A stretch of DNA of 64,000 bases from Lepidodermella squamata. Lineage: Eukaryota > Animalia > Gastrotricha. Location: assembly GCA_047495785.1 (NCBI GenBank), contig JBLDXI010000032.1, positions 310,001 through 374,000 on the forward strand. The letters are read 5' to 3'. The position numbers and the translations under genes were made by a program. The notes under the pieces were generated by a model. It did not search any database, was not told the origin of the DNA, and saw only the letters and a program-made list of their open reading frames with translations. Positions 3,412 through 53,261 of this stretch are shown in pieces; within the stretch, counting starts at the first letter, position 1, and every line of letters starts with the position of its first letter.

Positions 3412-5707
3412 CTAATCGAATTTCTCACAAAACTGAATGAGAAGCTTATTGTCAGAGTAGGTCTCATCAACGCGAATTTCTTTGATTGAGCTTAGCAGCG
3501 AACCATAATTATCAATAAGCCGGCATTTTTCAACCAAACTGGCATCGATTCTCGACCAATCAGCCAATAGTTCGATTGCCTTAATGAGCAGGTCATCTTT
3601 CAACCCAGTTTTAGCCAAAATTCGGCTGGCAAGATTGACCAGAAGCGGAGTATTAGCAACAATCATGTCTTTCACACGATCATCCGGAACTTCCAGAATC
3701 GAGGAACAGGTTTTAGCCGAAATTGCCAACAAAAATTCGACATCGATAAAAGAGTCAGCTTCGATTGATCGGGTGATGAGATTCTTCAAAAAGTCATTCA
3801 GTTTTGGTAAATTCAGCAACTTTATCAGCGCGTTTGAATCTGCGTGTTTCATCAAAGCAGCAAAGCAGGCCAAAGCGTCCTTTTCATGCACGCGATGCGA
3901 AATTAAGGAGGAGATTTTCTTTAGAACATCACAAGACTCCAATTGCAGCGAAACTTTGGCGAAAGCTTGGCACTTCTCGCTGAGATTTCTGATGATTTTC
4001 ACAGTATCTCCGACGTGAGATTTCGACTTTCTTATATCTTCATCCACAAAAACAGCCGCTAAATGCTTGGCGAGACGGCCAAGAAGATTCGCGTCGCTTA
4101 AAATTTCATTCAAATCGACATCATCTTCAGACGACAGATTCAGGGCCAGCGTCAAAGTTTGCTTCAGATGTTCTTTGGCCACTCTAGTTTCCGCCCAATA
4201 GTAATTCACAGCGTATTTTAATCGAGTCGCAACGTGGTGCCAAACACCAGGCCGAGCCGCTAGGATCCTCCTTAAATTCGGCCGTTCCGACGCGGCGAGC
4301 CAAAACGGTAGGAAAGACTCGTAAATAGGCATGGTCATCCTCATCATTTCAGACCTCGACACTAGATACAGAGAGCTGAGGGTAGCTAGCAGTGATAAGG
4401 CATGGTCCAGCTTTTCACGTTTCATCAATTCCAAACTATCGAGAAACCACGGTTCGCATAGAACAGACGTGATTTGCTTGTTGTACTTGTTGGTATTCGG
4501 CGAGTTTCGCACGTCATAAGCCGCGATGTGAAAACTCATGAGATGAGCGTAGAAAGACAGATCGTTGAAAGGCGGGGTATCTTTGATGTAAGAATTTCGC
4601 AACTTTTCATCGGCCAAAATGTTGTTCAGTACAGGCAAAAGACCTCCGACGAGAATTCCGACCGCGAAACTGTGGCCAATTCTGGGGAAGATTTCTTGAT
4701 AACTGTGAAAACTAGTCGCCGAAAACGCTAGTTTTGCCAGAGTTATGCCCAGAGGCGTTATCGAGAGTAAGATATCCATATTTTCGCTGAAAAAACTTTC
4801 GATCACGTTCAAGTACGATGCGACAAAACGAGCCTCGCCCTGGGTCATTTTGCTGATAACAGGCATCGGTTCTTCCATAAATTCGCGGATATAAGGCGTT
4901 TTCATCGCCATTTGAGGGATTAAGCAATACCATCGCTGTAGAATACTATCGTCAATGTCGGCGTTAGCCATGTAGAAATACGTCATTTCAAGGGCCAAAT
5001 ACACCTCAGCCGATCGCTCGCCCGCCGTCGTCAATCTTCGCTCAAGTTCATCCAATTCTTCGATTTTCGCTTTGATAAGCTTCGAGGGTGGAATCGATTC
5101 GATCAGCCGGTTTGTCTCGCTTTTATAGAAGGCTTTGTCCTTTTCTGGGATAAGGTGATGGCTGTGTTCGTAGTGGAAACGAGCCTCGTCACCCCGGCCC
5201 AATTCGCAATAAGCTCTTATCGTCAGCAACTGCAGTTTCACCGAGCCATGCAAGTCCATATCAGCGCCAACACTCAGGAAACACGATGCTTCTTCAGGGC
5301 AGCCGTCGTTTATGTAGGCTATTCCGATATTAGAGTAATTTTTCACCTCGTAAGGGTCTATGCTGATCGCCTTGTGGTAGCTAGCGATGGCTTCTTTGAA
5401 GTTTTTCTTACGATAGTGCTCATTGCCAACTTCACGAACATCTTCAGCCTCGAGCTGACGGTCTAATTTGACGGAATCACCATAAATTTGATCACCTGAA
5501 AGGAAAATCGGTCAATTTCAAATGCAGGAGAAAGTTAAAGAACCTACTGAGCGTTATGTGGACGTGAGTATATATCACATTCGCGTTTTCTATCTTCGAT
5601 ACAGCGGCCAAATTTTCTGGTGTATCGATGGGACTAGGAATTATGTCCTCAAATTCAATCGCTTCATAATTCAGTTTACCACCGAAAAGCGTTTTCCAAT
5701 AAGCCAT
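3412..5707 (-). CDS. TPR/helical-repeat family paralogue 1 (747 aa; exons 5707-5548, 5495-3412)
   Basis: ATG at 5707 (MAYWKTLFGG). A 52-nt GT-AG intron (5547-5496, phase 1) restores the frame into TPR1 (VREVGNEHYRKKNFKEAIASYHKAISIDP) and then the 644-aa ORF. Family motifs PFNDLSFY, EPWF, FW...RPGVW. Confidence 0.9.
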
Positions 5708-5975
5708 CTTAATAACTCCTAAAAGGTTCAGTAAAATTGCGGTGCAAAAATGAAGAAAAATGAGCCTAGCCTCAAAACTCGGAAAAGAGTTTTTCATAAA
5801 ATCTCGGCATTTCTAAATCCGCAGAAAATGCGTTTTACTTATCCGCAATTTCAGAAAATAATTATTATACATCTGGAAAACTGGAGTAACACTATTTACA
5901 AGACGATGGTGCATGAAAATAAGCGTCAATTTATGTTTTTTTTCATTCTCGCTCTAAAAATGATCCTCACTAGTT

Positions 5976-8900
5976 TCAGACCGCGTTTGCACTATTCAGA
6001 TCAAGCTTGGACATGCGAATCGCCTCGACGATAGCCGGGTCAGCAGCCGATAGCTTCGAAACTAGATTTGGCAAATTAGAATTTTCCGGCATCGATTTCG
6101 ACAGTTTTACAATTCCCTTCGCCATATCTTGATATTTCGAGGCTAAAATCGCAGCGATCAATTTTTCTTTCCCAGCAGCTAAAAACTCATCCTTAAAAAG
6201 AGCTCCAAGCAAATCAACAGCCGCAATCTTCACTGCATCGTTGTCAAAAGTAGCGATGATTTCGACTAGACGATCAATCAATTTGGCAAATTTTTCGTCT
6301 TTAACCAACTTCGCAACCGAATCTTGAGTAGCTTTCTGAGCCAATTTAGCGCAGCTGATTAAAGCAACAGATAACGTGTCGATATTGGTCAATTTGGTCT
6401 GGATTAAGGCAACAACAGCATTTCGAAGACCTTTCGCATGCCTTTTCAGGACTAATTCAGGGAATTCAGGACGGCATTCCGAGAGGCTGTTGATAATTTC
6501 AAACGTAGCGCGAGATATTGAATCGATGAAAGTAGGCGAAAGGCCGCTCAAGCTCTTTTTAGTTGGAATTTCCAGCAACATTTCAAAGGCAATTGGAAAT
6601 TCTTCCATGCAAGGATTTTGGTCGAAAATCGCGGGATTAAGAGGGAACTTCGCCAGGTTACGAAGAGTTCGAATGGTGTCCTCCAAATGGCCTCGGCAAT
6701 TCGAATTTGTCGATTCAAAAACGCAAATATGAGCAACCGCCTTACGCAGACGGCCGCACAGATGCAGCCAAAGGCCAGGCCGATCAGCAGCGATTGGACC
6801 CAAAACCGGGTTCGATGAAATTTTCAGCCAAAAATTGAGGAAAGACGAGAAGGGCGGGTTATCGATTTCAGCCATATTATAGCGACAGCTGTACAGAATT
6901 GCACTTAAAGTGTTCAATAATGAAAACGAATGATCGAGCGATTTTCTCGGCATTTTCTCCATTTTTTGAATAGACCACTGTTCGCAGAGAAGGTTGCAAA
7001 CTTCGCGGGCAAATGCGTCGGTTTTCGGCGATTCAATCGTGTCGAAAACAGTCAACATCATGCTGAAGTAATGGCAATAGAAAGACAGATCGTTCAGAGG
7101 CGCCGTTTCCTTGATAGCGGAATTTCGAATCGAAGGATAGCCGATCAAGGCGGTCAAAATTTGCATGTAAGCTGTGAAAAATCCACCGCAAATGTAACTG
7201 GCTCCGACAGTTTTGTAGCAAGCTTGAACGTTGGTTCGTTTCGTAAGGGCGAGGCCGAGTTTAGCCATGAATGGCATGAAGCAAGGTAATTCAACCAATT
7301 TCTTCGCATTTTCCAAGCTTTCTTGACATGCATAGTTTACCTGGAATAATTAAAATAAATCAGTTAAATAAACGAAAAAATTTGCTAAAATTCTGAATTC
7401 ATTTTGTTTTTTCCTTAATCCATGCAGCCCATGCATTTCAGGTAGTATTTAGCAGCCCCTACGCCCAGAATCAAAGCGTTATAGTAACATTTCCAGTGTT
7501 ACATACCCGAAATCTTTGTTGTAATATTGAGCGATTTAATCGAACAAAGACTTGTTAAGTTAGAACATAACCAGGTTTCTCTGAATCTACGACTGAACTT
7601 TGATGGAATAACTTCGCTTTCAAGCATGCTGGCACTGGAACTAAAGTCTGGCAATTAGTTGCTAGCATCTTCTGCAATTTGCCAGAGTTCACTAGTTTCA
7701 AGCCTGAGAATATGTTGTTGCTTGGTATATGGCAAGGTCCACAAATCTAAAACCGTCTGATGACTTCAAAGCGCCCGAAGATCTCAAGGTGGAAGTCTTG
7801 GATTATTCAAAAGCTCTTTGCTCTAGTTTTTGTGCTGGTCGCTGCCACAGTTGGGCGCCGCCAGTTCAGGTGCTCCCAAGGTTCCGCCCACCGCCAACGA
7901 TCAGGCTGGAACCAATGCTGCCGCCAGTTCAGGTGCTCCCAAGGTTCCGCCCACCGCCAACGATCAGGCTGGAACCAATGCTGCCGCCAGTTCAGGTGCT
8001 CCCAAGGTTCCGCCCACCGCCTATTATCAGGCTGGAACCAGCACTTCTGCTATTTCCGCGCTGCCCCAGTCCAGGCCAAATCCAGGCGATCAGGCCGGAA
8101 GCAGTGCTGTTGGGTCGGAAAACCAGCCGCCACAGCAGGAATTCGCAACTGAACAGCGAGAGGCAAGCTTAGATACCTGGATAACACTGCATTTCGACAG
8201 CAGGTGACTTATTTCCCAGTTTATGCCAGTTGGGCGCACGAACAATCAACTTCAAGTTGTCAGGACCGTGCATCACCTGGCATTTCAAGTTGCTTACCCT
8301 GACAAATCAGGGGTCCAAAATAAACACGCCACGCATCATTTGCGCCTTGCGATGCTCACACCGCAAAGATAGCACACAGCAGTCACGATTTATTACAAGT
8401 TTCCGAGTCTAAGCGTATCATGTAAAGTTAACTCCGGCCTCGTCATACCTGGTGAGTACCTCACGGGTTTAATACAGCTAAAATACTACCTCATTGAGAA
8501 GGTCGGGCCGAAGTTGGCAGTCTTTAATCGCGGAGAAAAATTTAGCCGGTTGTCCAGCTGGAAGGCGGAGATGGCCGGAAATGGCTATCCAAAACCCAAC
8601 CGGACCCTGCTACGGTCGATCGTTCCATCGCCCTTGGGCTGTTCGATAATATTATCCATCGCAACCACCTTCGCCAACCCTACTGTCAGCTGCATCTTAC
8701 TAAGAAGAATACGAGGAACAGAACGACGGTACGACTACTATATTCCGACGATCCCTGGTGAAAATTTAGCAGTACCTGCGATTGCCGAGATTACGCTGGC
8801 ACAAAAGTATTGCCAACAAACATTAAAATTCATTTCTTTGTTGCTGAACACTGGCAGCTGCCAATTCCTCATATATTTCCAGGCTTCAATTAAAACTACG

Positions 8901-11900
8901 ACATTTCATTTAGTTGACTTTTCATCAGCACTAAACATTCCCTTTCAAGCATTCTCTATATTTCTTGCTTTGATTTAGATTGGCGCAAAAGCCCGTCGGT
9001 GTTGTGTTTGTGTCAAAAATTACCTGCTGTGGTATTAATTTATGCCATTCACCATTGCTTCGCCAACCACTTATTTTAAGAAAAAATTGCTTCGTTCATC
9101 ATTCAGCTTCTTGCATCTCACCGTCACGACATGTTTATTGTTGGTGAAATTTTCTCAAGCCGAGAAATTATCCGTGCAGACATCAAATAACGGGACTACG
9201 CGCTACGCATCGATATTTGTGGTGAATAAATAACTCCGCCTTCACTATATTGTACAAATATCGAATTCATTGTGAATTCCCTATTCCCTAAATCTGTGAA
9301 ACTTCCTGTTCATTTACCTCACGAGAGAGGCGTGCTCTTTACAGCTGATGACAACCTACAAACTATCGTTGAGCAAGATAGCAAATCAATGCTGGAAAGT
9401 TTCTTTGAGTTAAATCGCGTTGCAAGGGATGAAATTGAAGTGTTGGATGTGACTACAACATCGCACGACCAACTCAATTTACATTTACAAGCCATGAGAA
9501 CTGGGGTCAACTGTTAAATGATTGCCAACTGCCCATGCGTAATAAACCAGTGCGGTCAACTTTTGTCAAACCGCAGTTAACCTGGGCCCTGTCCTCCAAT
9601 GATCAGCCCGGCGCTTCGAACCGGCACTAAACCTTTAACCGCGAAAATTCCCGAGAAAATTGAGAAGGCATTTTTTGGGTGAATAATCCATCCAAACTTT
9701 AACACTGCGAAGAATCGGTGTTACTTCATACAGGGTATTTCAAACAGTGATAATTTCATACATTTTTACATTAAATCGTGGCTATTTCATACAGTGTCAA
9801 TCTGGACAATGATTTTTCGTAAATATAAGTGGAGATCAAGATTATTTCGTACAAAACAAGGATTGATTTCAACTCATGAAATCGTGATAATTTCATACCG
9901 AAAGTTAAACGAGCTATAAAGCGGCTCAAGAACCATAATCCAGCTTAATAGCTCGTAATTGCTACTTACTCGCTACCATGCTTTTCTTAACCTTACGACA
10001 TTTACTGCCTTTGCTTATCGTATGCGACGTATGCAGTAAGGATTGCCCCACTGAGCGCGGCTTGAAGATTCACAAGACAAGTCGCTGTATAGCAAGAAAT
10101 GTCACACCGGCTTCTACATCTTCTACGCCGGCAATGAGCCGCCAAACTTCAGTTGCAATGGAGTTCGAGGACTCTATTCCCATTTTTCGAGTACATCGAC
10201 TCGTATTGGTTTAAAGATGTAACCGAGGAGAGATGGTGTGTTTATCGGAAGGAATTTCGCACTAACAACTTTGCAGAAGGCAACAACAACGGGATTAACA
10301 CGAAGGTTGGAGTGAGTCACCCTAATGTCTGGCGTTTTCGAATTCTATGCTCGAGCTAGAAAACGATTCTCGAGTTGTTATCGACCAAATCACCTACAAG
10401 CCGGCTAGCTCCGGAACCAAGCAAAAATATCGAACTTAATCAAGTCGCGCTGGGACGAGTTCGATCAGAACAAGCTTATTCCAATTGAGTTCTTAGATGC
10501 GGTTTCCGATGTACTTTCTCAACTCAAGGAGAAGAAGCCCAGGGCGAAAGAATACTTCCGCGAACTGGCCCCGTTGGACTTTGTTGATCCTGAGGGTGAA
10601 AGTGAAGATGATAATAATGATCATAAAGATGATTAACGATTAAATCTGTTTTCCGGGTGTAGAGAAGAATAAAGTATGAAATTATCACGATTTTCGTTGG
10701 TATTTATTTTCGTATGAGAAAGTCACAAAAAAATCAGAAAAATGTCATGAAAATATCACGGAAATAATGTACGAGTTACTACTGGTTTTGTATGAAATTA
10801 TCACTGTATGAAGTACATTGTATGAACTAACACTTTACCCGGCCAACACTATGAGCCGAAAGATAATTACGATACATGAAATGCATAAAAATTATTGAAG
10901 AAATAAATAAATATCAAGAGGCTAGGATACGAACCTGTAACAAGAAAACGCCAACGAATCGAAATTCGTTTCCAGTCATCTGGGGCAATCGACCTTCAGG
11001 ATCCCGGACAAATTCGGCGATAAAAGGCGTTTCAGTGAACATTTTGCAGAGAACATCAAGCCATTCCACCGGGCAGTGTAGCTTATTCCGAGACGCATCC
11101 ATGAAATGCTCACTCAAAAAGAGATAGACCTCCGCAGATCGCTCGCCACTGGTCAACAATCGCCGGCCGAATTCTTCCATATCCTGGCGATCGTTTCGAT
11201 CATGTTGCAAGTCACGCGGGACCGATCGAATAATTTTCTCCAATTCGGATTTGTAAGTCTTCTTATCAGCCTTGTCGATTAGATGCATGTTATCCAGCCC
11301 CCACGACTTCGCCGCCTTGTAAAACCCGAGGTTAGCCGTTGCTTGGACCATGAGTAAATGAGCTTTAGCCGAAGTGCGACCCACATCGATCGCCATACTA
11401 GTAGCTGCCAGGGCCTCTTCATGTAGGCCCAGGGCCATGTAGCAAATTGCTATGTTATTGAATAGACGAACGTCGTACGAAGCGAGAAGTAAGGCTCGAC
11501 GGTAAGCTTCGATCGCCTCCTCGTACTTTCCCTCGCCGTGCAATTTGTTGCCAAGTTGTCGAATCGGTTCGGCGTCGACGAGCCGGTCTTCTTTAGAGCG
11601 CCCTCCTTCCATTTCGATCGCTAAAAAACAAAATTGAAGAATAAATATGAAAAATCAGGATAATTCGGCGAAATTTGGCGAAGACTCATCTGCCTAAAAA
11701 TGTCTTAATTCTTTCACCATTCTGTAGAGCCCTAAGGAAAGACCTTAGTTCGTCACACACTTCTGATTCAATACAACTGACCCTTCTGCTACGCCGTCTG
11801 GCTCTGGATCAGGGCCAAGCGCACCTCCCGTGACTTTACAGGTATCAATTAATTTACAGGTCAAGCGACGCCTCTGGTTCCCGATTCGAACGTCAAGGTC

Positions 11901-13993
11901 CTCACTATCGATTCTCACTATAAAAAGTGAAGGTCGAATGAATTCCTTAGGTATCTACACATTTGCACCGTTAATCATGTTTTTCAGATTTTATTCATTC
12001 ATCCACTTCTTCGATTCAGTCACAATCATGGTCTTCAGGCAGTGCCAACAAAAAATTGCTTGTTTCTCTCGATCCAATAGAAGATAATATTTTCCTTCAA
12101 GCAGTGGAGACGCCAAAGGGTAAGAAAGTCCGCGGACATTCGTCGAAAAAAACATTTAATACTCCTGTAAGCTTTTTGACACATTATTCTTAACCAAATT
12201 ATTAGACACTGCCCGCTGCTACAATTAGGCTGTTTTATTTTTTGACAAAAGCTCACTGAAAAAATTGCTTTAATTTTCTCAATGTCTGCTTTGTAATGCA
12301 GTCCTAATTATATTCCTACAGCATTTCAATACTCTTTGATTCTCTTCAAAAACATAGGCAGTTTGTGGCGATCGGCGGCAAGCTCCATTACGGCGAAGCG
12401 GTCGATAGAGGGCTGCGAAATTCGCGGCTCCTTTGTTCAATATTTGCGGAAATCCACGACGTTCACGGACATCTTGGTCGGCATGCCGTCATCAATTTGA
12501 TGAGAATGGAATTCTACAAGGTCCCGGATGCCCTGATCTACGAATATCTACAAGAAATCTGTCTAAAATCAGGATGTCCGTCGAATTTTGATAACGATTC
12601 TGCTGATAATGATATGGTTTAACCGAATCTTTCTGCTCAAGGTATCCTGAACGCATATTCAGGCATGACACCCACACAATTGTACTCTTTACTTGCTAGT
12701 AAGGTTCAAAGTCATCAATGGGTTCTACACGCCGGCGCCAGCTCGCAAATGTGCAACAATCCACGTCTTTTCAGAGATCCGACACGGCTTGCCGAGCAAA
12801 CCAATGTCGACCTGGGAAATGTGCGTCGAAATCCTGCCTAAATCCTGCCTACTAGTCCTGCCAATGCCTACAGGCTCCAGCAAGCGTTCAGCGCTAATGG
12901 GTCCTGGTACTTGGGTTCCTTACGTATACGATCGCCTCAGGAGCTGTTCCGCTTCAGTGCTGTTACTCAGTATCTGTTGAGTGCAGCACGGTTTCAAATA
13001 TTTGCCAGGCATGCCATTGACAACCGTTACATGCAACCCACCACTCCAGCTCCGGGTCAAGTGGCTGAGTCTGTCACTCTGTTTGAGGAAGCCAAAACGG
13101 CAGTTGCCAACGTGTTGGCCTCCATCCGTTGTTTTGCGCCTGTACTTCCATTGTGAGGGGTGTCATGTTGATACGCATTCCGTATTGCATATATGCAGGT
13201 CAAACCGCGAGCACCAACAACTCACTGATATTACCTGCACTTGGCAACCTGGATCTGGCTCAGCTACAAAAAATCATCCAGTCGAAACACTTCCAAATCC
13301 GTTTAAATTACCTCAAGGAATTAATCGAAGAAAGGTTACTAGACCTACCATGGTTCCACCAGGAAGTCTTAACTATGGTAATACGCGAGCTACTGTTCAC
13401 GATTGTGCCGTTGGCATGTATGGTATGGAAATGTGAGAACTCATTTTCTTCATCACGAATCAGCATTTTCGACTCCTGCTACCAAAATGAGTCAGCAGCA
13501 ACCTCGCAAATTCAATTTCCTATCATCTGCCGTGTTGCAACAATCGATTTCTGTTAATCGGAGTTTGACTTCCAACTACCGATTTCGGCCGCCTCAAATA
13601 AATACCTCACTACCGACTCCGACAACCCGCAATGTTGCTGCTAGATTGAAAAATCAGGCGCAACAATGCGAACAATAACGAAGAGGAAAACTACACGCTG
13701 AGTTGCTTTTTTGCTCAATCTCAAGTCACCCGGTTATTATCGCTAAATCTGTAGGCCTCAAAAATGAGTATTGCAAAGCGAAATACGAATAGCTATGTCG
13801 AAAATAAAATTGCCACCTTAAAAATCTCAAACTCACACATTTTTTTGAACAATTCAGCAACACGATTGCAGTTGTTCATATCAGCAAAAAGCCGTAAATG
13901 CTCGACGGTATCGACCGGCTGTGGGACGTTAGTTCCAGTCGCAGCAGCTGCATAATCGAAGTCAGCTCCAAAAGTTGCCCGGACGGTTTCCAT
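5976..13993 (-). CDS. TPR/helical-repeat family paralogue 2 (735 aa; exons 13993-13837, 11620-10935, 7340-5976)
   Basis: Exon 1 METVRATFG ends at donor GTGAGT (13836, phase 1), matching acceptor TTTTTAG at 11621. Donor GTTCGT at 10934 matches acceptor TTCCAG at 7341 (phase 0). The joined protein is colinear with paralogue 1 (RRLLTSGERSAEVYL vs RRLTTAGERSAEVYL; TAPLNDLSFY vs TPPFNDLSFY). Confidence 0.85.
7857..8045. repeat. 63-bp tandem repeat, about 3 copies
   Basis: The unit GCCGCCAGTTCAGGTGCTCCCAAGGTTCCGCCCACCGCCAACGATCAGGCTGGAACCAATGCT starts at 7857, 7920 and 7983. The third copy diverges. Confidence 0.95.
9255..9430 (+). mobile_element. Helitron Rep/Helicase fragment
   Basis: SVKLPVHLPHERGVLF...KSMLESFFELNRVARD matches the Helitron linker motif 'V.RL.VHLP..Q.V.F...TML..WF.LN..D..AR'. 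A frameshifted YRI.CEFPI lies just upstream. Confidence 0.65.
9712..10840 (+). mobile_element. Internally deleted Mutator-like (MULE) element with terminal inverted repeats
   Basis: Left end GTGTTACTTCATACAGGGTATTTCAAACAGTGATAATTTCATAC (from 9718) matches the reverse complement of the right end (GTGTTAGTTCATACAATGTACTTCATACAGTGATAATTTCATAC, ending about 10833). Subterminal GTGATAATTTCATAC motifs are also inverted. The internal sequence FFEYIDSYW...WCVY...RTNNFAEG...HPNVWRF is a MULE C-terminal motif. Confidence 0.75.
12365..12622 (+). mobile_element. Integrase zinc-binding (H2C2) domain fragment, Gypsy/Ginger-like
   Basis: IHDVHGHLGRHAV...EFYKVP...IYEYLQEICLKSGC follows the H..GH.G...C..C pattern. 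Lies in intron 1 of paralogue 2. Confidence 0.5.
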
Positions 13994-14144: not shown

Positions 14145-17100
14145 CTAATCATCTTCATCATCTCCTTCCTGAGATTCGATCAATCGGTCCAAAGCATCGA
14201 TGCAGCTATCTTCCGCAATTTTTTCAGCCTTTTTAAGCAGATTTCGATAGCTCCGATCAGCGTTGAGAATAGCCGGTAGGACGATGCCCGCAGCGAATGA
14301 ACCGACAATGGGGTCGACCGCAGCTGCTTTAGCTCGCTGTGATGTGGGCGCGGGGGTGGAAACGATGGCTTTCACAAGTTTCTGAACCATGCCCATCGAA
14401 CGCTTCTGCTCGTCGTTGGTGTCGAAGCTGAGGGCGGCGGCCACGCGAGTCTTCACGCGGTCTTTCATCGTCAGCAGGTAGTACCTAAAATGCAAATTTG
14501 GTAAATTTATCATTAAGATTGAAGGGACTAAATTTAATGAAGCTGAATTAATCGTGACTCCGCTTTGAAATAAGCGGCCCCAGCTTAAAAGAGAAAAAGT
14601 AGCTGAAAACAAAGCTCAATCCGATCCTACACTTCCACCGGATCTACAACACCTGTTACTATCACTACGGCTGATGTTATTAGTACACTCAAAATCGTTT
14701 TGTTCAGCTCAGATGAAATTCGCTCCTCATTTCTAGCCAATGCATTATCTTTTAGATCTTTTCCAGCATTAAAACCTGGAAGTCTTTTCCATTACTCCAA
14801 CTTGAGTAATGGAAGCTTCTGTTGCCGTCTGCGCACTCTTAGGACTGATAACAGTACTGACAATTGAAGCGCTGGCCGCATTAATGGAACAATTTTTAGC
14901 CGGTTTGCTTTCTGGAGTAGCCTTCACGGTTGCTGCCTCCAGCGCATACCACGTAATATCGCGCTATCGCGATCGCGATCGCCAGGCCAGCGACGAAGAC
15001 ACCGTAGAGCTAGGTCTTCTGAACAACACTGCCGGCAGCACGGCCGGCACCTCAATTTCTGAAAATGTCGATGGCTAATTTTCGTTGCTCCTCTATAGCT
15101 AGCAGCATTCTCTTCTTAGTGCCAGATAATCACTTTCGATTTTAATTTCGCTCAACTCATACCCATGGCGTAGAAACTTGGATGGAAGCTCAAAATATAT
15201 TCAACTAATTCGTAGGTTAATTTCATGGTATAATGGACATTTTTATTGCCGGATTTGTTCGTGGGGCTGCGTTAGCTGCGTGGGGCTACACAAGCGCCTT
15301 CGAGCGCCTGAAAAGTTACCTAGAACGACGCCGAGAAGCTGAATGCCGAGGCCAAGAGGTAAATGTCCAGTATTTAAATTCTAGTGGCCTCTAGCCAGGT
15401 AAGGAAAAAGTTATTTCCTTCCACTCGCTTAGGCTGTTCCCTAAACTAAGCAGCATCACGCGAGCCTTGCTAGAAATAGTAACATGGCTAATATTACATT
15501 CCTTATTTTAATAGATTTTATTGTTCATGGATTATTTTTTTGGCGGTTTAATTTCCGGAGTGGCCTTCGCGGCTGTTGTCTCCGGTGTTTACCACATTAT
15601 ACGCTATCGCGATCGCGATCGCCACCAGGCGACGAATCGCGACGAAGACGCTGTTGAGTTAGGCCTTTTGGACAATACTTCAGGCAGCGGCAGCACGACG
15701 GCGTCGATCGCCTTTTCGACCCCAATCGTTGTTCGGTATCCAAAAAAGCCCGATCTGTCTGAAGCCAATGGCCCCGCGTACAACACGCGAGGGCGGCGGC
15801 TCGACGCCAATGACGAAGTGAATTTTAAACGAAGAGATAATTTTTAGTCGTATAGAAATTGAAAATTGAAACTGAGCTTTGTGTTTATATCAGATTCATC
15901 AGAAAGGGTTGGCATTATCAGGTAACGGCTATAGAATATCTCAAGTCTGAAATCAAGCTTATAACGCTTCTTTGCATGAGCTCACGGCTTAACTAAATTT
16001 TCACCAAGCTTTGCTTCATCTAAAATTCCACCTTAAAAGCCTTTCAATTCATTTTCCATCTGCAATATTCACTAGCTAAAATTCACGCACCGTGCGATAA
16101 ATGGTAACTATCGACAATTTGTCACCGTTGAAGCCGTGAAGCAGAAGAGATAGCTCAACAGCCGCCGCGTTACTGAGCGAACTCGGACCCGCAAGCCATT
16201 TCAGCATTCGAGAGATGACCATTGATGAGTTTTATCAAATCACTCAAAAAAATCGTTCACTCGTAGATGAAAAAATTTATTTGACTTTACTATTTTCAAA
16301 AACCTGATGAGTGTGTTAGGCCCAACTCTAAACCAACTCTAACAATTTGACGTGGCGGAAAGAACTTACAGTGACAAGCTCGAATGAGCAACAACTGCCG
16401 GCAACACCAACAACACTATAAGGGCAATGCCCACATTCTCACAATTGTTGAACATCTTTGCCACTTCGCCCAAGCAAAACCGATGAAAACAATCACACCT
16501 GAAGCGACGGCCGATGCCCTTGAATCATATTTCTTGCAGTACGGAATACCCGACGTTCTACTTACTGATCGTGGCTTTCTCAAAGGAATTTCAATTAATC
16601 ATGTAAGTGGCCCCAAAACAGCCCGTTTTTTCCCCCTTGACTATTACCTTCCTATAGCATGTCTGATATCGAAATGCATCAACTCAGCGCAGCCCTGCCC
16701 GAAACCGAGTCCGAAAACGAGTTCTTCGTAAAAACCATGGCTCAATCAGCTTTTCCTTCCGACGGCATCCTCGATGCTAAGTTCGACTTCCGTCTAACTA
16801 GGGCCCAGGTTGGCGAAGCGGCTTCCTCCATGAGTGGCGAACGCGACTGGAAGCTGCTGTTCATCCCTCTGATCCTTCAGCACATCACGTCTGCGCCCAT
16901 CAGGACCCGCGTTTTGAAGGCCATCGCCACCGCCTTCAAGGAAGCCCTTCTGCCTGCTCCTCCACTCGCTGTTCCTGCTGCTGCTCTCCTGTCCTCTGTC
17001 GTCACCGTCCCTGCTGTGCCGGATGCTCCTGCTGCGCTTCTTTCCCCTGCCCTGGCTCTTCAACTTTCGTCGCCCGGCCCTGCCTTGCTCGCACCGCGGC

Positions 17101-41533: not shown

Positions 41534-42520
41534 TTAGCAACTGCCCTCTTCCGTAAACGGGTAATCCGGGTGTTCACGGATACCAGGGAAAGGCAGCCAG
41601 AAATATCGCTTGTTCGCATCAATCGCAGTCATTGCCTTCATATCAGAATCAGTTAGCTCGAAATCCCAAACGTTGAAATTATCGATCACTCGGGCTGGAG
41701 TCAAGCTCTTTGGAATGACGGTCACGCCTCGCTGGAGCTGCCACCTTAAAATAACCTGAGCCGTAGATTTCGCATGCCGCTGAGCGATTTCAAGAATTCT
41801 TGGGTCGTCGAGATAATTTACAGGAATCAACTGCTTTCCAGTCAATATCGAGATAGTCCCAGGGCTTCCGAAGCTTGAATAACCGGTGACAGCGACGCCG
41901 TTTTTCAGGCAAAATTCGGTTAGTTTCGTATTTTGAAAACCAGGATGCGACTCAACCTGATTGACCGCTGGTTTAATTTTCGATTTCAGCAATCGATCAA
42001 CTTGGCTGATGCTGCAATTTGAGACTCCGATCGATCGAACCAAACCGGCTTCGACGCACTTCTCCATCGCAGTCCAAGTATCTTCCAGGGTGAAACCGGT
42101 TTCAAATTCAACCTTACCATCCGGGGTCTTCTTAGCCATTTCACCGGCTTCGGTCGGCGGTTTCAACGCGACAGGGAAGTGAATGAGCCAAAGATCGAGG
42201 TAGGTTGTCCTCAGCTTGGCCAGTTGCGTTTTCAGAGCGCTTTCCACAGTTTCAGGTCGCAGTTGAGTGAGAAATATTTTAGTCGTCAAAAATAACTCTT
42301 CTCGTTTGATTTTCCCAGCATCGTATAGCTCTTGCAGGGTATCACCGATGACTTGCTCGTTGCCGTAGATATGAGCTGTATCAATATGACGATAACCAGC
42401 ATCGATCGCCGCCTTGAGGCCGGTAGCTAACGCAGCAGAATCGCTTGCCTGCCAAGTCCCGTAGCCAAGAACAGGAAAATCATACCCGGAATTTAGTTTG
42501 ACGGTCTTCTCCAAAACCAT
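41534..42520 (-). CDS. Aldo-keto reductase, copy 5
   Basis: LNSG..FPVLGYGTW, GYRHIDTAHIY, TTK, LIHFP, IPKS. Confidence 0.96.
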   Translation of the reverse strand: MVLEKTVKLNSGYDFPVLGYGTWQASDSAALATGLKAAIDAGYRHIDTAHIYGNEQVIGDTLQELYDAGKIKREELFLTTKIFLTQLRPETVESALKTQLAKLRTTYLDLWLIHFPVALKPPTEAGEMAKKTPDGKVEFETGFTLEDTWTAMEKCVEAGLVRSIGVSNCSISQVDRLLKSKIKPAVNQVESHPGFQNTKLTEFCLKNGVAVTGYSSFGSPGTISILTGKQLIPVNYLDDPRILEIAQRHAKSTAQVILRWQLQRGVTVIPKSLTPARVIDNFNVWDFELTDSDMKAMTAIDANKRYFWLPFPGIREHPDYPFTEEGSC

Positions 42521-42624: not shown

Positions 42625-44950
42625 TTACGCCTTATCAGGGTAGGCGTAACTTTTGTTATTACGAATAATACGCAAAACCGAAGAGCCAAGTTCATCATTA
42701 GTCAAGGTCCACCGGATCAGCGCTTGATATTTCGTGATAGGCGCATCTCCCTGTTCAGTTTTACGCTCTTCCTTCGCCCCATCATCGCTATCATCGGGGA
42801 CTGACTCGCTAAGCCTGACAAAAGCAGCGTCTCGGACTGAGACTACCGGGAAACCGTCATCGACAGCGACTTGAACGCCCGGGGCCGGGAAATATTTGCC
42901 GAGAAGAGCGGCTAATGACTCGGTCAGTTTGTCGATAGATAGAACTGATGAGAATTCGTAGCGAACCGCGACTCGTAGAGCATGTTCTCGAACAGCCCCA
43001 GCTGTAGCCGTTAGATCAGCCAGGGCAGAGGCAGGGTCTCTCAGATGAAGAAGAGGAGACCCGTCACTCGAAGTCCTAGGCGCGGTGGAGGAATTATTTG
43101 TCATGACAAAACCGTGGCATAGCTTCATTCGGCTCAAATTCAACTGCTTCGAAAGACCAGGGTTGCTTGAGACTGGAATTAGTTTCGTTAGAAGCGACCG
43201 TTCGACCGAAACTTTGACCTGAAGCGGGGTTTTAATCGAAACTGTCTCGCCATTAGCCGGGCAGAAGCCTTCGATTCCGAACTCGGACGAGATCTTTTTG
43301 CTCATATAATTCATTTTCTCAGCCTCGCCGTGGACTAGCAGCACGTGTTTTGGCCGGCAATGTTGGACGAGTTGCAAGATTCCTTTCGCATCGGCGTGGG
43401 CTGAAAATGACAGGTAATGCACGCCTAATTTGACGTTGATCGTCGGACCGCCATTAGGGGGTTCGATATGCTTTTGGCCCTGCAAAACCTTCCACCCAAT
43501 AGTACCAGCCGTGCAGTAACCAGGGATGATCAACATGTTCTTAGCGTCATCTGCCCATTTTTTGAACAGGGTCAGTGACATACCGGCGTGGAGCATACCC
43601 GGTGAGGCGAAAACAACCATCGGCCCAGAGTCTTTTTGGTCGATCAGCGAGCGTTCGAAGGGTCGAACGTGCTTGAAATCGAACACGTTGTGATGACGCA
43701 TCAGAGCTCGTTTCACTGCTTCGTTTGTCCACGCGGCGAAAAGGCGGTAATACACATTGGCGGCTTCGGCTAAACCTTTGCTGACGTAGATCGGGTATTT
43801 GAGATTCATGCGTTGCCAGTAATTTTCGAGTAGGAGACAAAGCTCTTGAGCACGGCCGAGGGCGAAAACTGGGATTAGGACTTTCCCTCCAACTTCCAGG
43901 CAGTCACATACGCGTTGAAGCAAATCACGTTCGCGGCAACGTTTCGAGTCTCGAATCGTAGTCGCATAAGTAGACCTGAAGAAGAAAACAGAAAATAAAA
44001 ATATCTCCCTTAAAATATAGAAAATCTGAATTTTATTCCCATGCAATTGGATGGTTGCTTTTTGACGGATGTCATGTACTTCAATCAAGTTGAGGCTGCA
44101 GGCTTCACAAATCAATTTTGCTACAAGGCACGCATATTGCGACCACTATAACAAATGCTATTAAAATTATAATCTCGAGGTTTTTGCTCGAATTGTTCAT
44201 TTTCCCCAATATATGATTCTATTAAACATGAATTTTCAATAAGTACCTATCATTAATAATTAATCGAATTATTTAATTTGGCGCAAAATGAAAGGAATTT
44301 TTGACGACTCACTCTGAAATCAAAACATCAGGATAGCAGCGCAGAGCTTTGGCAGGTCCAAGATGTCTATCGGCCGTCATATTGAAATCACCGGTATACA
44401 AAATCGACTGATGACCGCATCGAACCAGGAACATACACGCCCCCAACACGTGGCCAGCATACAGCGCGCAGATTTCAAGATCAGGAGGGCCCTTTTTGAT
44501 AGTCACCCAATCCATAAGACGAACTGGTCTGACTTTCGCGATGCAGTCTCGAATCTGATTGGTCGAAAATGGTTCAATACCACCGGAAGCTTCGACCGCA
44601 ACTCGCCGGAAGTCTTCGATCAAAATCGGGCAAAGCGCTCGAGTTGGCAGGGTCATGTAAATCGGCCCGTTATAGCCAACAACTTCGCTCATGTAAGGCA
44701 TAGCGCCGCAATGGTCGAGGTGGAAATGCGAGATTAGGACAGCGTCCAAGTAGTCGTCTAACCGGCCTGGTTCGGATTGAGTGCCGCCAGTTATGAAGCT
44801 GAAATCAGGGAATCGACGCTCGTCATTGTAGCCCATATGCATGCCGCAATCCAGCATAATATTATAGCCACCAGCGGTGAACGTGACCAAAATACAAGAC
44901 CGGCCGACATCTTGCCCAGCCCCAAGCGGTGTGATTTTGATCTCAGACAT
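42625..44950 (-). CDS. INTS11: Integrator complex subunit 11 (CPSF3L) beta-CASP endonuclease (662 aa; exons 44950-44313, 43975-42625)
   Basis: [55 protein letters not shown] (across a 337-nt phase-2 intron), [27 protein letters not shown]. Confidence 0.96.
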
Positions 44951-45060
44951 GAGATTCAATAGTTTAAAAAATCTAAAAATAAATTCATTCGATAATTACT
45001 CGAAAAGAATCAATAATTAGTTTCAAGCTTTCCAAGCAGTCATTTGTTCTTTGGCATAAA

Positions 45061-46053
45061 TTAGCAGCTAGTGCCATCGGGAGCATGCGGGTACTCTGGG
45101 TGGCTTCGCATTCCAGGTAAATCGAACCAGATAAATCGCGTGTTCAAATCCATGGCAGCAATCGATTTCATCTCGTCGTCATTCAGCTCGAAATCCCACA
45201 CGTTGATATTATCAACGATTCTAGCAGGGGTTGTGCTTTTAGGAATCACCAATAGCCCGCGTTGAATTTGCCATCTCAGAATCACCTGGGCCGTGTTCTT
45301 GCCATATTTCGCCCCGATTCCAACCAGAGTCGGATCTTCCAAGAAATTCTTATCACACATTTCCTTGCCAGTCGCTGAATTTTTAGTGCCGGGTGATCCA
45401 AATTGACTATAAGCCATGATTTCAATCCCGTTTTTCAGGCAGAAGTCGATTTGTTTCGTATTTTGGAAACCAGGGTTTGACTCGACTTGGTTGACAGCCG
45501 GCTTAATTTTCGCAACATTCAGAATTCGCTGAACTTGGCTGATGTTGAAGTTCGAAATTCCGATAGAACGAGTCAGGCCCAACTCGACGCACTTCTCCAT
45601 GGCAGCCCAGGTTTGTTCTAGGGTAGTCTCCAAATCCAGCTTAATCTTGCCATCAGCACCGAATGGAAGCATCTGGCCAGGTTCCGGGGGTTGAAATGCA
45701 ACTGGGAAGTGGATCAGGTACAGATCCACGTAAGTTGTACGTAGGTCTTTCAGCTCTTTGCGCAGTTGATCAGCGACCAAATCGGGTCGGAAATGCGTGC
45801 AGAAGAGTTTGGTCGTCAGGAACAAATCCTCCCGTTTCACAGCACCAGCATCGTACAGCTCTTGCAGGGCCTCGCCGATGATGTGTTCGTTCAGGTAACA
45901 CTGGGCTGTGTCAATGTGACGATAGCCGGCATGAATCGCAGCTTTGACTGCGGTTTTCAGCTGCTCGGCATCCCTTGCTTGAAAAGTACCATAGCCGACA
46001 ACAGGGATATCAAAGCCGGAAGACAAACGTTTGACTTGAGGAATTGCAGGCAT
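45061..46053 (-). CDS. Aldo-keto reductase, copy 6
   Basis: GYRHIDTAQCY, TTK, LYLIHFP, IGISNF, IPKS. Closest to copy 5. ATG at 46053. Confidence 0.96.
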   Translation of the reverse strand: MPAIPQVKRLSSGFDIPVVGYGTFQARDAEQLKTAVKAAIHAGYRHIDTAQCYLNEHIIGEALQELYDAGAVKREDLFLTTKLFCTHFRPDLVADQLRKELKDLRTTYVDLYLIHFPVAFQPPEPGQMLPFGADGKIKLDLETTLEQTWAAMEKCVELGLTRSIGISNFNISQVQRILNVAKIKPAVNQVESNPGFQNTKQIDFCLKNGIEIMAYSQFGSPGTKNSATGKEMCDKNFLEDPTLVGIGAKYGKNTAQVILRWQIQRGLLVIPKSTTPARIVDNINVWDFELNDDEMKSIAAMDLNTRFIWFDLPGMRSHPEYPHAPDGTSC

Positions 46054-46058
46054 TGTCA

Positions 46059-46090
46059 CAATGATATTAAGAACTGAGCCGCCTTAAATA
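46059..46090 (-). promoter_or_regulatory. Candidate core promoter (TATA-like plus initiator) for AKR copy 6
   Basis: TATTTAA at 46090-46084 lies 28 nt upstream of the A in an Inr-like TCATTG (46064-46059). This gene lacks the T-rich AG acceptor seen before most of its neighbours. Confidence 0.4.
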
Positions 46091-49391: not shown

Positions 49392-49880
49392 TCAATTTCT
49401 CAATAATTGGATTGAATCATTTCGAATGTTCTCGGAGGCTCCCATCAAATAACTTGTGTGATTGAATTCAGGCGCCATAAGAGATGCTGTGATGTCGTTG
49501 AAAACACTGACCATATGAACGACAGCGATCAAAACAACGGCTAAGATTGCGAGACTAGTTGCGATGGCAACGCACGCCAGAATTATGGAAGCTCGGTAGC
49601 TCTGACTATCGCCATATTTTTTGCCCGCGAGTGCCAGCGCAGGAATGGAACAGCAAATACAGCCGAAAAACATGCTGGCTATTGACATAGGAAGAGCGAA
49701 TTTTCGAAGACATTCGTTTTCTTTGATTGTCGTAGGCGTTTGCAGTTGAACTGTTTGAGGTAAGATGACGTAGACTCGACTAGGATCGTTTCCGTACCAG
49801 ACAGAGGGTTGGCAGTAGCTAGGTGGTGGCGCGTAATAAGGCGGTGGCGGAGGGTAATTTTGATCGCCACATTCACCCAT
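49392..49880 (-). CDS. CD225/dispanin (IFITM/PRRT-like) membrane protein
   Basis: Pro/Tyr-rich N-terminus with PPPY and PPSY, an intramembrane segment SIASMFFGCICCSIPALAL, a short GD loop, a TM segment (IILACVAIATSLAILAVVLIAVV), and a C-terminal tail with NxS/T sequons. Confidence 0.55.
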   Translation of the reverse strand: MGECGDQNYPPPPPYYAPPPSYCQPSVWYGNDPSRVYVILPQTVQLQTPTTIKENECLRKFALPMSIASMFFGCICCSIPALALAGKKYGDSQSYRASIILACVAIATSLAILAVVLIAVVHMVSVFNDITASLMAPEFNHTSYLMGASENIRNDSIQLLRN

Positions 49881-50224: not shown

Positions 50225-50884
50225 CTACGGCAAGTTAATCAGCGCCTGAATGACGATGTGTGGGGTAATAAGAGCTCGTGGCGAATACTGAGTAGCCGAG
50301 TGATTTAATGAAGCCGATTCTGAGATGTCCGTTGCAATAGCAGCGCCGACGACAATACCTAGAAGTTCCCTTCCAAACGCGTTAAAACACGGCCCCCCAG
50401 AATCACCAGGACGAGATCCAGCATCGCCCAAAACATGCCCAAAACTGTCATAAGGCTGACTGGTAATATTACCGACAGTAAAACTCAACGATTCAGGAGT
50501 TTCTGGAGAAAAGCCAAGCTGAAAGTACGTCATGCCTATATCGACATATAGATTTACAATGGCAAGAAATAGTTTCAACTTACCGGGATAAGCAAGCGCG
50601 AACTTCGGAACCTTAATAGACGTTTTCGTCCTAAGCAAGATTATGTCCGCTTTGTCATGAATACGCCAAACTTCAGTATCGACAAGCGCACCAGTTGCTG
50701 CATTCTTCAGTTGCACAGTTTGACCAGGAATCCAAGAGGTATGAACGGTATGACGAAACGTTACGATAACATTTTCAGCGACAGCAGTGTGACAAACATG
50801 TTCGTTGTCTTGAACCGAAACGTAAATGAATTGCTTGCCGTAGTTTAAAGCATCCTTGAACAAATTTTCATCGTATTGTGCCAT
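50225..50884 (-). CDS. Trypsin-fold (PA clan) serine protease without signal peptide; possible 39-nt in-frame intron at 50557-50519
   Basis: Catalytic triad motifs VTFRH (His), ADIILL (Asp), RPGDSGGP (Ser), followed by LLGIVVG. No hydrophobic leader. Confidence 0.8.
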   Translation of the reverse strand: MAQYDENLFKDALNYGKQFIYVSVQDNEHVCHTAVAENVIVTFRHTVHTSWIPGQTVQLKNAATGALVDTEVWRIHDKADIILLRTKTSIKVPKFALAYPGKLKLFLAIVNLYVDIGMTYFQLGFSPETPESLSFTVGNITSQPYDSFGHVLGDAGSRPGDSGGPCFNAFGRELLGIVVGAAIATDISESASLNHSATQYSPRALITPHIVIQALINLP

Positions 50885-50903: not shown

Positions 50904-51036
50904 ACATTAACCCATGTTTTATTTAACCACCTATTACAAGTAATACACTGAAATTTATTAAGTGAAAAATTAGTGGTAATAATAGGCACAGGTTGAGCAA
51001 GTATGTTTAGGTAATCAATTGATTGAGTTAAGATTT
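50904..51036. repeat. Direct repeat copy A (duplicated CD225-gene leader ahead of the protease)
   Basis: Matches 49869-49990. It carries ATG GGT TAA where copy B has ATG GGT GAA, and overlaps the last codons of paralogue 9. Confidence 0.9.
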
Positions 51037-53261
51037 GCCATTGATTGGCAAATGTCGTAATAAATGTCATTTGTAAATTTTGGGTACATCAAATCTCTGA
51101 TACCAGGGTCTTGTTCAGTAAACGTGGCCAGTAATTTTGTGGCAGAGGCAGCAGCCAAGTCACTGACGAGAAAGGCAACCGGAGGAGCACGGGCTTCGGA
51201 TGCAACTGATCGACAGGTGTTCAAGTAGGCGAAAAACGAAACCAAAGAATCGACTAGACGTAGCAAACCAGCAGGCCTTTTCGTCAAAACTTGGCGCAAA
51301 ATTAGGAAATTCTCATCCGAGAATCCGATTAAACAGTCAAGGCAAATACAAGCATTAGCAACATCCGCTGAGGACGAGCTTGGGTCAAAAATCGTTGTGA
51401 CAGCGTATTCGAACAAAAAATACAACCGGCCATAATCAGGAGCGACAGCGTAAGGCGACTGAAGCGACAAAACATAGATGCTGAAAGCAGACCGGGAATT
51501 TGACTTCGACTCGTCAAGAGTCACGATGTGAGTAATCACACTCAACAACAGCTTGTAATCACAGATTTTAAAAAATGCGTTAGAAAAGGCACTCGAGCAT
51601 TGCAGTAATCGAAGGCACAAAGTGGAAAGCCCGAATATAAACTTTTGAGGCAGTAATGAGTTGTTTTCAATACATTTCTCGAAAATATCACAGAATACAC
51701 GAGCTGTATCCCGGCTCAGTTCATGCGTCCAGATAGCAGTCATTTCTTCGATATGTGCTAAGGAATTATGTGCCGTAAATTTCAATGCAACACTCATTAC
51801 ACCATAGACTTCTTGTTGAACATCGAATCCGAGCATCGACAATTTCTCCGCATTCGCAAGAATCAGGGAAAAGGTTCGAAAGCATACAGCCCAAGTTTCA
51901 GATCGGTGAGCACAATATCGGATGATTTTCGGGTCTTTTGTTAGAAAAGATAAAATTCGAGCGAAAGAAAATCGGTGTTTGACCGGCAGATCCTTTTCGT
52001 TGATTGTTCGGTCACCGAACTTGGCTTCTACCGAGCACCAGAATCCCAAAAACGAGACTGCGGTCCACAGCGAGAAGGTGCAATTAACATGAGGTCCAAG
52101 AGGTCGAAGATACAAGAGATCCGACATTATCAGGTTCGATAGAGTTTCAGCGAGGCCAATAAATGATTCGCTCAACGCCACACGAGATGGTTTGCAATTA
52201 AACGATAATATCAAGCGAAACAGCAGTGAAACGTATGTGTCAGGGCTAGCAAATAAATTCTTGTCCAACAAGGAATAATGCGAATTAGACTTGAGAATCG
52301 CACATATTATATTGGATAGATTGGTGAGCATCGATACCAGAAGATTATTGCTCCAGATGTCACGAGACATTTCCAAACTGAGAATGTCTTTACACAGAAA
52401 AGTCAAAAACGAAACGAAGCGACAGTCTGCAATCAAACCGGAAAGAAAGCTTGGCACATCAAGGCCTAGCTTTCCAATGACGCGCAGAAATAGTTGAAGC
52501 AAAATTCTTTCGGAATCGCTGAGGTCAACAATAGACACTGTCGAATTTAACAAGCGAGTCAAGACACCGGCATTAGCAAAATCATTGTATGAGATCCGCG
52601 AGGCAACAAAGCTTGAGCCATTGAATTCAACGTGTTTTAATATATGTCCCAGCAAGAACAAGGAGTAATCGGCGGAAATCTCATGATTCAAACGGTCGAT
52701 GGTAGTTAATAGATCTCTCTCATCCAACAAAACATTCTCCATGTCTCTCATGAGAGCCAATTTCTCAAAGGCCTGCATCGTTTTCAAGGATTCGACTGAC
52801 CCATCAATCGCCAGAATTTTTGACGCCAAGTCAGTGTAGCCAATGTAAAAATATGCGACTGCAGCATAATGATATGCTTTTGACCAAGACGGGTCCAAGG
52901 CACAAGCGGAGAAAGCAGACGCGGCGGCTAACTCAGGCTTATCAATCTTCAAATAGACCGCAGCAATATTAGTGCGAAGCTTTGCGTCAAAGGGCATCAA
53001 CGGGATGGCATGCTGATAACTTGCTAAAGCAGCATCGTATTTCCGATCGATAAAGAAGTCGTTTCCTTCAGACCTTAGCTTGGTCCCTGACGCGAATGCA
53101 GCTTGATTCTCCGCGGAATTCGGGAGGATCTCGTTGACTACTTTCAAAGCAAAATTGGCGACAGGAACCTTTAAAATCTCGCTGGATATGAACTCATCAG
53201 CTAAGACCTCGCAACTATGATGGTACGCTTCGAAGTTGCGAAAATACTCTGAAATACGCAT
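51015..53261 (-). CDS. TPR/helical-repeat family paralogue 9 (748 aa, intronless)
   Basis: LRSEGNDFF, LRTNIAAVY, WSKAY, LLDERDLLTTIDRL, FLLGHI, CAHRSETW, NACICL. Confidence 0.92.
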   Translation of the reverse strand: MRISEYFRNFEAYHHSCEVLADEFISSEILKVPVANFALKVVNEILPNSAENQAAFASGTKLRSEGNDFFIDRKYDAALASYQHAIPLMPFDAKLRTNIAAVYLKIDKPELAAASAFSACALDPSWSKAYHYAAVAYFYIGYTDLASKILAIDGSVESLKTMQAFEKLALMRDMENVLLDERDLLTTIDRLNHEISADYSLFLLGHILKHVEFNGSSFVASRISYNDFANAGVLTRLLNSTVSIVDLSDSERILLQLFLRVIGKLGLDVPSFLSGLIADCRFVSFLTFLCKDILSLEMSRDIWSNNLLVSMLTNLSNIICAILKSNSHYSLLDKNLFASPDTYVSLLFRLILSFNCKPSRVALSESFIGLAETLSNLIMSDLLYLRPLGPHVNCTFSLWTAVSFLGFWCSVEAKFGDRTINEKDLPVKHRFSFARILSFLTKDPKIIRYCAHRSETWAVCFRTFSLILANAEKLSMLGFDVQQEVYGVMSVALKFTAHNSLAHIEEMTAIWTHELSRDTARVFCDIFEKCIENNSLLPQKFIFGLSTLCLRLLQCSSAFSNAFFKICDYKLLLSVITHIVTLDESKSNSRSAFSIYVLSLQSPYAVAPDYGRLYFLFEYAVTTIFDPSSSSADVANACICLDCLIGFSDENFLILRQVLTKRPAGLLRLVDSLVSFFAYLNTCRSVASEARAPPVAFLVSDLAAASATKLLATFTEQDPGIRDLMYPKFTNDIYYDICQSMANLNSIN

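Follow-up and report, generated by a model that had tools for sequence, protein, structure and literature searches.

A stretch of 64,000 nt from the genome of the gastrotrich Lepidodermella squamata (GenBank assembly GCA_047495785.1, contig JBLDXI010000032.1, positions 310,001 to 374,000; hereafter the window) carries a tandem cluster of related genes whose products join a TPR domain to a long helical body. The window is eukaryotic in character, with approximately 43% G+C and short introns. On its minus strand, between positions 3412 and 53261, there are nine intact spliced genes encoding proteins of 723-805 amino acids (aa), and none of the nine contains an internal stop (Table 1). Their common layout comprises a short N-terminal (L/F)FG motif, which the alignment places in seven of the nine members, followed by three TPRs, a linker helix and approximately 550 aa of helical repeats. 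As described below, this family is an old, lineage-restricted and tandemly arrayed expansion, and those members that were tested (HI, B and C) are under purifying selection.

The gene models were built from the continuity of open reading frames (ORFs), from GT..AG splice sites and from a family hidden Markov model (HMM) whose matches cover each gene once over its whole length. A starter profile, made from the members of obvious structure (A, B, C, D, G and L), was run on all six-frame open segments of the window. It matched fragments that are complementary in their profile positions (E 41-370 and F 462-696; H 4-228 and I 246-670; J 56-250 and K 292-662) and likewise a short exon at 14005-13796 that encodes an N-terminal part. 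A second profile, made from all 15 family sequences with the relatives described below included, covers exactly nine genes along their full length and detects nothing further in the window. An alternative count of twelve loci, in which E, F, H, I, J and K would be six truncated genes, was rejected because the HMM reveals complementary halves and transcript contigs join H to I. Models from an automatic gene finder, which placed spurious small exons inside the long introns, were replaced by the HMM-guided junctions.

In member C the exon junction gives back the TPR consensus (...AIEAYKRALDLQPGD). The best GT..AG junctions of EF recover the FL..H and FW...R motifs, with HMM tiles at 1-205, 211-440 and 446-744, and the best-scoring junctions of JK yield an intact spliced ORF with tiles at 1-47, 49-280 and 277-742. 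For both genes we infer the placement of the long introns from sequence. Next to L, at the left edge of the window, lies what is probably the first exon of a tenth member, which matches exon 1 of L with 49% identity over 43 aa (MDTWGVLFGGKLDYEAI...; E-value 1e-14 in a single comparison). HMM tiling of positions 1-2886 found no further family exons, and the rest of this gene would lie beyond the window start.

Table 1. Members of the TPR-helical family and neighbouring genes in the window
Feature	Positions	Strand	Structure and basis
Member A	53261-51015	minus	Single exon, 748 aa; ORF, family HMM end to end; most divergent member; lacks the (L/F)FG motif
Member B	49007-47192 + 47132-46615	minus	2 exons, 59-nt intron, 777 aa; HMM tiling
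Member C	37085-36827 + 36297-35369 + 35269-34196	minus	3 exons, 753 aa
Member D	33943-33504 + 33453-31536	minus	2 exons, 50-nt intron, 785 aa; basic low-complexity stretch near C-terminus
Member EF	30810-30161 + 29449-28623 + 25855-24927	minus	3 exons, introns of 711 and 2767 nt (the long one predicted), 801 aa
Member G	24791-22374	minus	Single exon, 805 aa; ORF; modelled with AlphaFold2
Member HI	22153-21322 + 18708-17472 + 14484-14145	minus	3 exons, introns of 2613 and 2987 nt, 802 aa
Member JK	13993-13837 + 11620-10935 + 7340-5976	minus	3 exons, predicted introns of 2216 and 3594 nt, 735 aa
Member L	5707-5579 + 5454-3412	minus	2 exons, 124-nt intron, 723 aa (753 aa with upstream ATG at 5797); HMM tiling
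Probable first exon of a tenth member	2934..3062	minus	
Six aldo-keto reductase (AKR) genes	37148-42520 and 45061-46059	minus	Intronless, tandem; between C and B
INTS11 gene	42625-44959	–	One intron; interrupts the AKR tandem
Small proline-rich membrane-like protein	49392-49880	minus	Between A and B
Trypsin-like peptidase	50225-50884	minus	219 aa; Pfam Trypsin_2 2.4e-6, GDSGGP motif; between A and B
APC/C-subunit-type (APC-like) TPR protein	54639-56223	plus	TPR_1 4e-18
Bax1-I/TMBIM gene	56338-56847	plus	

The nine proteins differ greatly from each other, with pairwise identities of 14-29%; the closest paralogue of JK is L, at 29%. Alignment places a further series of motifs in most members, namely LD..DL..T..RL, FL..H, PFN...W/Y, EPWF and FW....R...C..RP.(L/V)W....RL. 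When the TPR and linker were cut off, the C-terminal regions scored 25.8-174 bits against leave-one-out HMMs, compared with at most 7.2 bits for 200 shuffled sequences, and the 25.8 bits belong to member A. Every score exceeds those of the shuffles, and homology thus extends to the C-terminal regions of all nine proteins. Pairs of members are on average 27.8% identical in the TPR part and 17.4% in the solenoid. A preliminary description of this DNA had reported nine intact ORFs with one layout, the same set of motifs, very low similarity between members and a conserved TPR end joined to a variable solenoid. All of these observations stand, the TPR end being somewhat better conserved than the rest. 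That description had also named unrelated C-terminal regions as the result that would count against it, and the regions proved to be related.

Direct evidence of expression comes from sequencing run X1, which behaves like a transcriptome in that depth is found on exons only. Contigs from this run cover only the exons of HI. One of them joins 18706 to 21320 with GT..AG boundaries on the minus strand, and a second proceeds from 17469 into sequence ending at 14481, the start of the third exon. These contigs show that HI is expressed and that its introns of 2.6 and 3.0 kb are removed as the model predicts. Run X1 also holds a fraction of 0.40 of the sampled words of 27101-37100, a stretch of which the exons of C, D and EF make up approximately 0.6; this share gives indirect support for the expression of at least two of these three genes. 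Every family gene has a candidate T-rich ...TTTAG 3′ splice acceptor 3-30 nt upstream of its ATG (for example 24811-24822, 30830-30839 and 22168-22175), and C, D, EF, G, HI, JK and L succeed each other on one strand at spacings of 135-725 nt. To judge from the sequence, this arrangement would fit spliced-leader trans-splicing or operons.

The array might instead consist of decaying duplicates or be an artefact of the gene models. Three members need introns of 2.2-3.6 kb that hold repeats and a transposase relic, and the support from RNA is limited to the introns of HI. However, nine stop-free ORFs of 723-805 aa persist despite the low identity between them, HI yields spliced transcripts and only synonymous changes in its listed variation, and orthologues are conserved in another species (see below). 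We consider a non-functional array extremely improbable.

Relatives of the family were sought with an exhaustive HMMER search in which a post-TPR profile was compared with 1.84 billion cluster representatives (E-value up to 0.001). Eight matches were obtained, all of them ORFs without names. Seven look like relatives, and the remaining match (P0007) was set aside since it looks like a spurious repeat protein. All four matches that were traced (P0001, P0002, P0003 and P0005) sit on metagenome contigs in ENA. One 30-kb metagenome scaffold carries two of the matches in the order seen in the window: the APC-like TPR gene, the Bax1-I gene, B, the AKR cluster and C. The orthologue of B in this related species (L002) is 59-62% identical to its counterpart in the window, and that of C (L004/L005) is 51-54% identical. 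D-like genes with 24-27% identity occur as one tandem pair on each of two further contigs, which come from two more distant species.

Maximum-likelihood analysis places B and C each beside its own orthologue (support 100/100) and D with the four distant genes (100/99). In this tree the branches between paralogues of the window are several times longer than the species split, and the paralogue duplications are therefore old and long precede that split. The family is lineage-restricted and expanded: its relatives in the HMMER search are limited to ORFs without names, and nine tandem genes are present here.

The syntenic region also provides controls for evolutionary rate. Compared with the related species, INTS11 of the window is 80% identical, the APC-like TPR protein 73-80%, Bax1-I 61% and the best AKR pairs 57-63%. 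The 51-62% identity of the B and C orthologues falls within the range of the Bax1-I and AKR controls. The proportion of non-synonymous differences (pN) gives the same picture: B and C have values of 0.22-0.29, in line with the 0.26 of an AKR, and the APC-like gene has 0.14. The corresponding synonymous values (pS) are 0.78-0.89 in all compared genes, and because synonymous sites are saturated (pS 0.82-0.89) we give no dN/dS ratio between orthologues. A closer comparison is available for HI, in which the window and sequencing run X2 differ by 31 synonymous and no non-synonymous coding changes among the best-supported 40 of 113 differences. Approximately 22% of the sites are synonymous, and 31 of 31 is therefore far from neutral. 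HI, B and C are under purifying selection. The orthologue rates and the synonymous changes in HI indicate that, at least for these three members, age rather than fast evolution accounts for the low identity between paralogues. This corrects a tempting inference from the very low identity of tandem paralogues.

These data bear on the suggestion that the proteins serve innate defence as intracellular recognition receptors, in which a variable solenoid would bind pathogen molecules and evolve in an arms race. The family is large, tandem and highly diverged, and its repeat domain is the more variable part. Moreover, the syntenic scaffold of the related species lacks both member A and the adjoining trypsin-like protease gene, a sign of gene turnover. 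In contrast, the changes in HI listed above are exclusively synonymous, B and C diverge from their orthologues at the rate of AKR enzymes, and the paralogues are ancient. In addition, when seven members were compared with Pfam-A by hmmscan (E-value up to 0.1), only sub-threshold TPR matches and matches at chance level were returned; NACHT/NB-ARC, TIR, death fold, CARD and other signalling domains were absent, and the two structure models described below contain no alpha/beta domain. A receptor function is improbable on this evidence. Of the preliminary description, the lineage-specific expansion is supported, and the fast evolution, with its overtone of an arms race, is not.

Among natural proteins of solved structure, the nearest to the TPR part by sequence (phmmer against the PDB) are STIP1/Hop (4e-13), RPAP3 (4e-12) and CHIP (2e-8), and SGT, SPAG1 and PP5 are also matched. 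AlphaFold2 models of member G (mean predicted local distance difference test score, pLDDT, 78.8; predicted template modelling score, pTM, 0.76) and of the distant relative P0005 (pLDDT 82.5, pTM 0.80) are wholly helical. When these models were compared with solved structures using VIA-align 2, an in-house structural aligner, residues ~55-190 of G and 70-210 of P0005 superposed on solved TPR domains with Z scores of 13.8-15.5 and root-mean-square deviations (rmsd) of 2.0-3.2 Å. The best matches are PP5 (Z 15.5, rmsd 2.2 Å) and TPR1 of Hop (Z 15.1, rmsd 2.0 Å), followed by Sti1 and CHIP (Z 14-14.7) and by Sgt2, FKBP38, Cns1 and Tom70. The domain consists of three TPRs and a capping helix, and its nearest counterparts are the TPR domains of Hop, PP5 and CHIP. 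The (L/F)FG motif of the P0005 model has a pLDDT of 61-64, which is too low to judge whether this N-terminal motif docks on the body.

TPR domains that bind Hsp70 or Hsp90 carry a clamp of the form K-N-N-K-R, in which the fifth residue is Arg in Hop, PP5 and CHIP. To place the clamp positions in the family, the known motif pattern was read onto the family alignment. At the equivalents of Hop K8, N12, N43 and K73, members A, B, C, D, JK and L have (R/K)-N-N-K and HI has H-N-N-K. Four of the five clamp positions are thus kept in seven of the nine members, as they are in four of six relatives.

The remainder of each protein is predicted to form an armadillo-type (ARM) superhelix of stacked three-helix repeats, as whole-domain superposition of the models shows. 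The C-terminal part matches APC-ARM, beta-catenin and Ric-8A with Z scores of 15-16.6 overall. Specifically, 301 of 309 residues align with APC-ARM (Z 16.4, rmsd 4.2 Å) and 364 of 413 with Ric-8A (Z 16.2, 5.7 Å), and the superpositions on beta-catenin give Z 15.3-15.6 with rmsd 4.1-4.8 Å. The body also superposes on p115 and on C-terminal regions of Nup192 and WAPL. Scaffolds such as APC-ARM, beta-catenin, importin-alpha, Ric-8A, SPIN90 and SmgGDS have the same right-handed superhelix of three-helix repeats. Unlike the family, none of these has an N-terminal TPR domain; identities are 7-13%, no profile match was obtained, and the fold alone is common. Foldseek searches with the whole 805-aa G model against the PDB and the ESM Atlas returned generic solenoid and TPR matches (TM 0.1-0.33) that are uninformative.

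The TPR-plus-ARM layout inferred in the preliminary description is therefore borne out by the fold searches, and so is its view that the family had gone unrecognised. The family is new to current domain libraries, in which Pfam gives weak TPR matches only, and to protein databases, in which no named protein was recovered among the 1.84 billion; its architecture is already known. A word-indexed search of 5.8 billion proteins with G and with a 14-row post-TPR alignment gave no scoring match, within the limits of a method that depends on shared words. None of G, A and four AKR proteins had an exact match in the protein collection, and the proteins of this genome thus lie outside it.

The combination of a co-chaperone-class TPR with an ARM body suggests a tentative proposal, the likeliest of those considered here, to which we give somewhat less than an even chance and which agrees with the client-specific chaperone adaptors named in the preliminary description. 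The family proteins would be paralogue-specific adaptors or assembly factors, possibly linked to Hsp70/Hsp90. Each would be a soluble scaffold in which a three-repeat TPR of the Hsp70/Hsp90 co-chaperone class is connected by the conserved linker (LD..DL..T..RL, FL..H) to the ARM superhelix. The TPR groove would dock a C-terminal peptide, and because four of the five clamp positions are kept in most members, the tail of Hsp70 or Hsp90 would be the obvious candidate ligand. The concave ARM face, which is unlike between paralogues, would receive a partner specific to that paralogue. In this way every gene would supply one client with its own adaptor or assembly factor, in the manner of UNC-45 or TTC12 but as a member of neither family. 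The TPRs of EF and G may be used in a different way.

Several observations weigh against this proposal. At the fifth clamp position (the R77 equivalent), all 15 family sequences have Leu, Ile, Val, Tyr or Met, in contrast with the Arg of the Hop, PP5 and CHIP class, and EF and G (two of nine) have no clamp residue at all. Canonical binding of EEVD tails by these TPRs is doubtful for both reasons. The ARM matches are generic, since Z scores of 15-17 are only slightly above those that a helical-repeat arrangement alone would give, and the models therefore speak for an ARM fold and not for kinship with any ARM family. Direct evidence of expression was obtained for one member, HI. Finally, language-model features of the whole protein place UNC-45 and TTC12 as the nearest clusters (score 0.90-0.91), but this resemblance disappears when the TPR is removed, and various unrelated ARM/HEAT families then make up the nearest clusters. 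The resemblance is thus one of architecture.

This last result also addresses the possibility that the proteins are extremely diverged but true homologues of UNC-45, a myosin chaperone, or of TTC12, a dynein-arm assembly factor, that have multiplied in this lineage. UNC-45 (structure in PMC3549490) has the same domain order, with an N-terminal three-repeat TPR of the Hsp70/Hsp90 class and a long ARM body in a soluble, all-helical protein, and the proposed pairing of a TPR anchor with an ARM client groove would be common to both. It also ranks second in a Foldseek search of the PDB with the whole G model (E-value 3e-4). Nevertheless, the UNC45-central domain (PF11701) and UCS were absent from the Pfam-A results, and UNC-45 was not among the PDB sequences matched by the post-TPR profile. 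Its structures (6qdl/6qdk) reach only Z 13.1 with rmsd 26.9-30.4 Å, at ranks 37-45 and below approximately 35 unrelated ARM proteins, and so the fold match is no better than that of any ARM protein. The family proteins are also approximately 120-200 aa shorter and are encoded by at least nine copies within 50 kb, in contrast with the one or two UCS genes per genome reported previously (PMC9331494).

For TTC12, which is cytoplasmic and acts in dynein-arm assembly (PMC8836003), the shared features are a TPR head with ARM repeats, a length of approximately 700 aa and a language-model score of 0.90. No named TTC12 or UNC-45 appeared among the matches of the exhaustive profile search, and the likeness to TTC12 vanishes without the TPR. 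TTC12 is a single-copy gene, whereas the family is tandem. True homology with either protein is accordingly quite improbable, and the members are not one-to-one counterparts of UNC-45 or TTC12, in keeping with the preliminary description.

A different use of the same architecture would be as substrate receptors or adaptors of a ubiquitin ligase or another degradation pathway, in which the ARM domain would read substrates or degrons in the manner of ZYG11B/ZER1 and the TPR would provide the link to the ligase or to substrates bound by chaperones, as in CHIP. The ARM domain of ZYG11B, a CUL2 substrate receptor, is the sole solved protein reached by the post-TPR profile among PDB sequences (E-value 0.022, 16.9 bits over approximately 120 residues), and CHIP is among the closest relatives of the TPR domain. 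However, the E-value is not significant and any ARM repeat can produce a match of this strength. In contrast to ZYG11B/ZER1, the family has neither LRR nor a BC/Cul2 box, and the Pfam comparison found no BC-box, Cul-box, U-box, F-box or SOCS box in its proteins. The scan of other ORFs in the window likewise revealed no gene with a SOCS box. We regard a role in degradation as unlikely.

Returning to the proposal of client-specific adaptors, a bolder version of it would have the family represent an undescribed class of TPR-ARM co-chaperone adaptors with one client each, that is, multiplied ‘private’ targeting factors for Hsp70/Hsp90 that would be among the largest gene families of this animal. 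This version is also unlikely. Such multiplication of targeting factors would be unlike the situation in model organisms. Factors with a client-specific role are known mainly from single-copy genes such as UNC-45 and TTC12. If the adaptor proposal is true, the cluster would offer a naturally occurring collection of ARM scaffolds that are anchored by a TPR and differ in specificity, and would help in asking how chaperone and assembly systems gain client-specific factors. Whatever their function, these conserved and expressed genes make up a substantial block in an animal lineage that has been little sampled.

Some members share an additional C-terminal feature. Within the last 60-80 residues of D, G, B, EF and the C orthologue of the related species there are Lys/Arg-rich stretches (KNRKQSKK, RPTRRARR, SKKKRR), which sit ahead of a conserved last helix, (K/R)L(L/F)..L...D. 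They resemble nuclear localisation signals, although this is only a pattern.

Among the neighbouring genes (Table 1), the succession of B, the AKR cluster and C is the same in the related metagenome species (L002/L004). INTS11 has only approximately 45% identity to any named animal sequence and 80% to a metagenome ORF, and this lineage thus lacks a close annotated relative in the protein collection. The APC-like TPR gene and the Bax1-I gene are syntenic in the related species, whose corresponding region also contains a match of 39% to the small proline-rich protein.

Intron positions are unlike in all paralogues, and A and G are intronless. They are unlike even in orthologues, as the C genes of the two species each have introns that the other lacks. 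The B orthologue has a single change of frame, at ...GLISF / SACDFFF..., for which an assembly error, a very short intron and a true frameshift are all conceivable. The regions of the related species concerned here are L004:9840-9960 and L002:11150-11260. Repeat-like DNA is present in the five introns of 2.2-3.6 kb (25856-28622, 14485-17471, 18709-21321, 7341-10934 and 11621-13836). The long intron of EF includes a relic of a DDE_1 transposase at 27092-27388 (E-value 1.5e-4), and a JK intron includes a 63-bp tandem repeat at 7857-8109. In the introns of HI, a diverged 160-bp direct repeat occupies 14881-15039 and 15524-15688, and the depth of run X2 peaks at 19253-19614 and 16900-17261.

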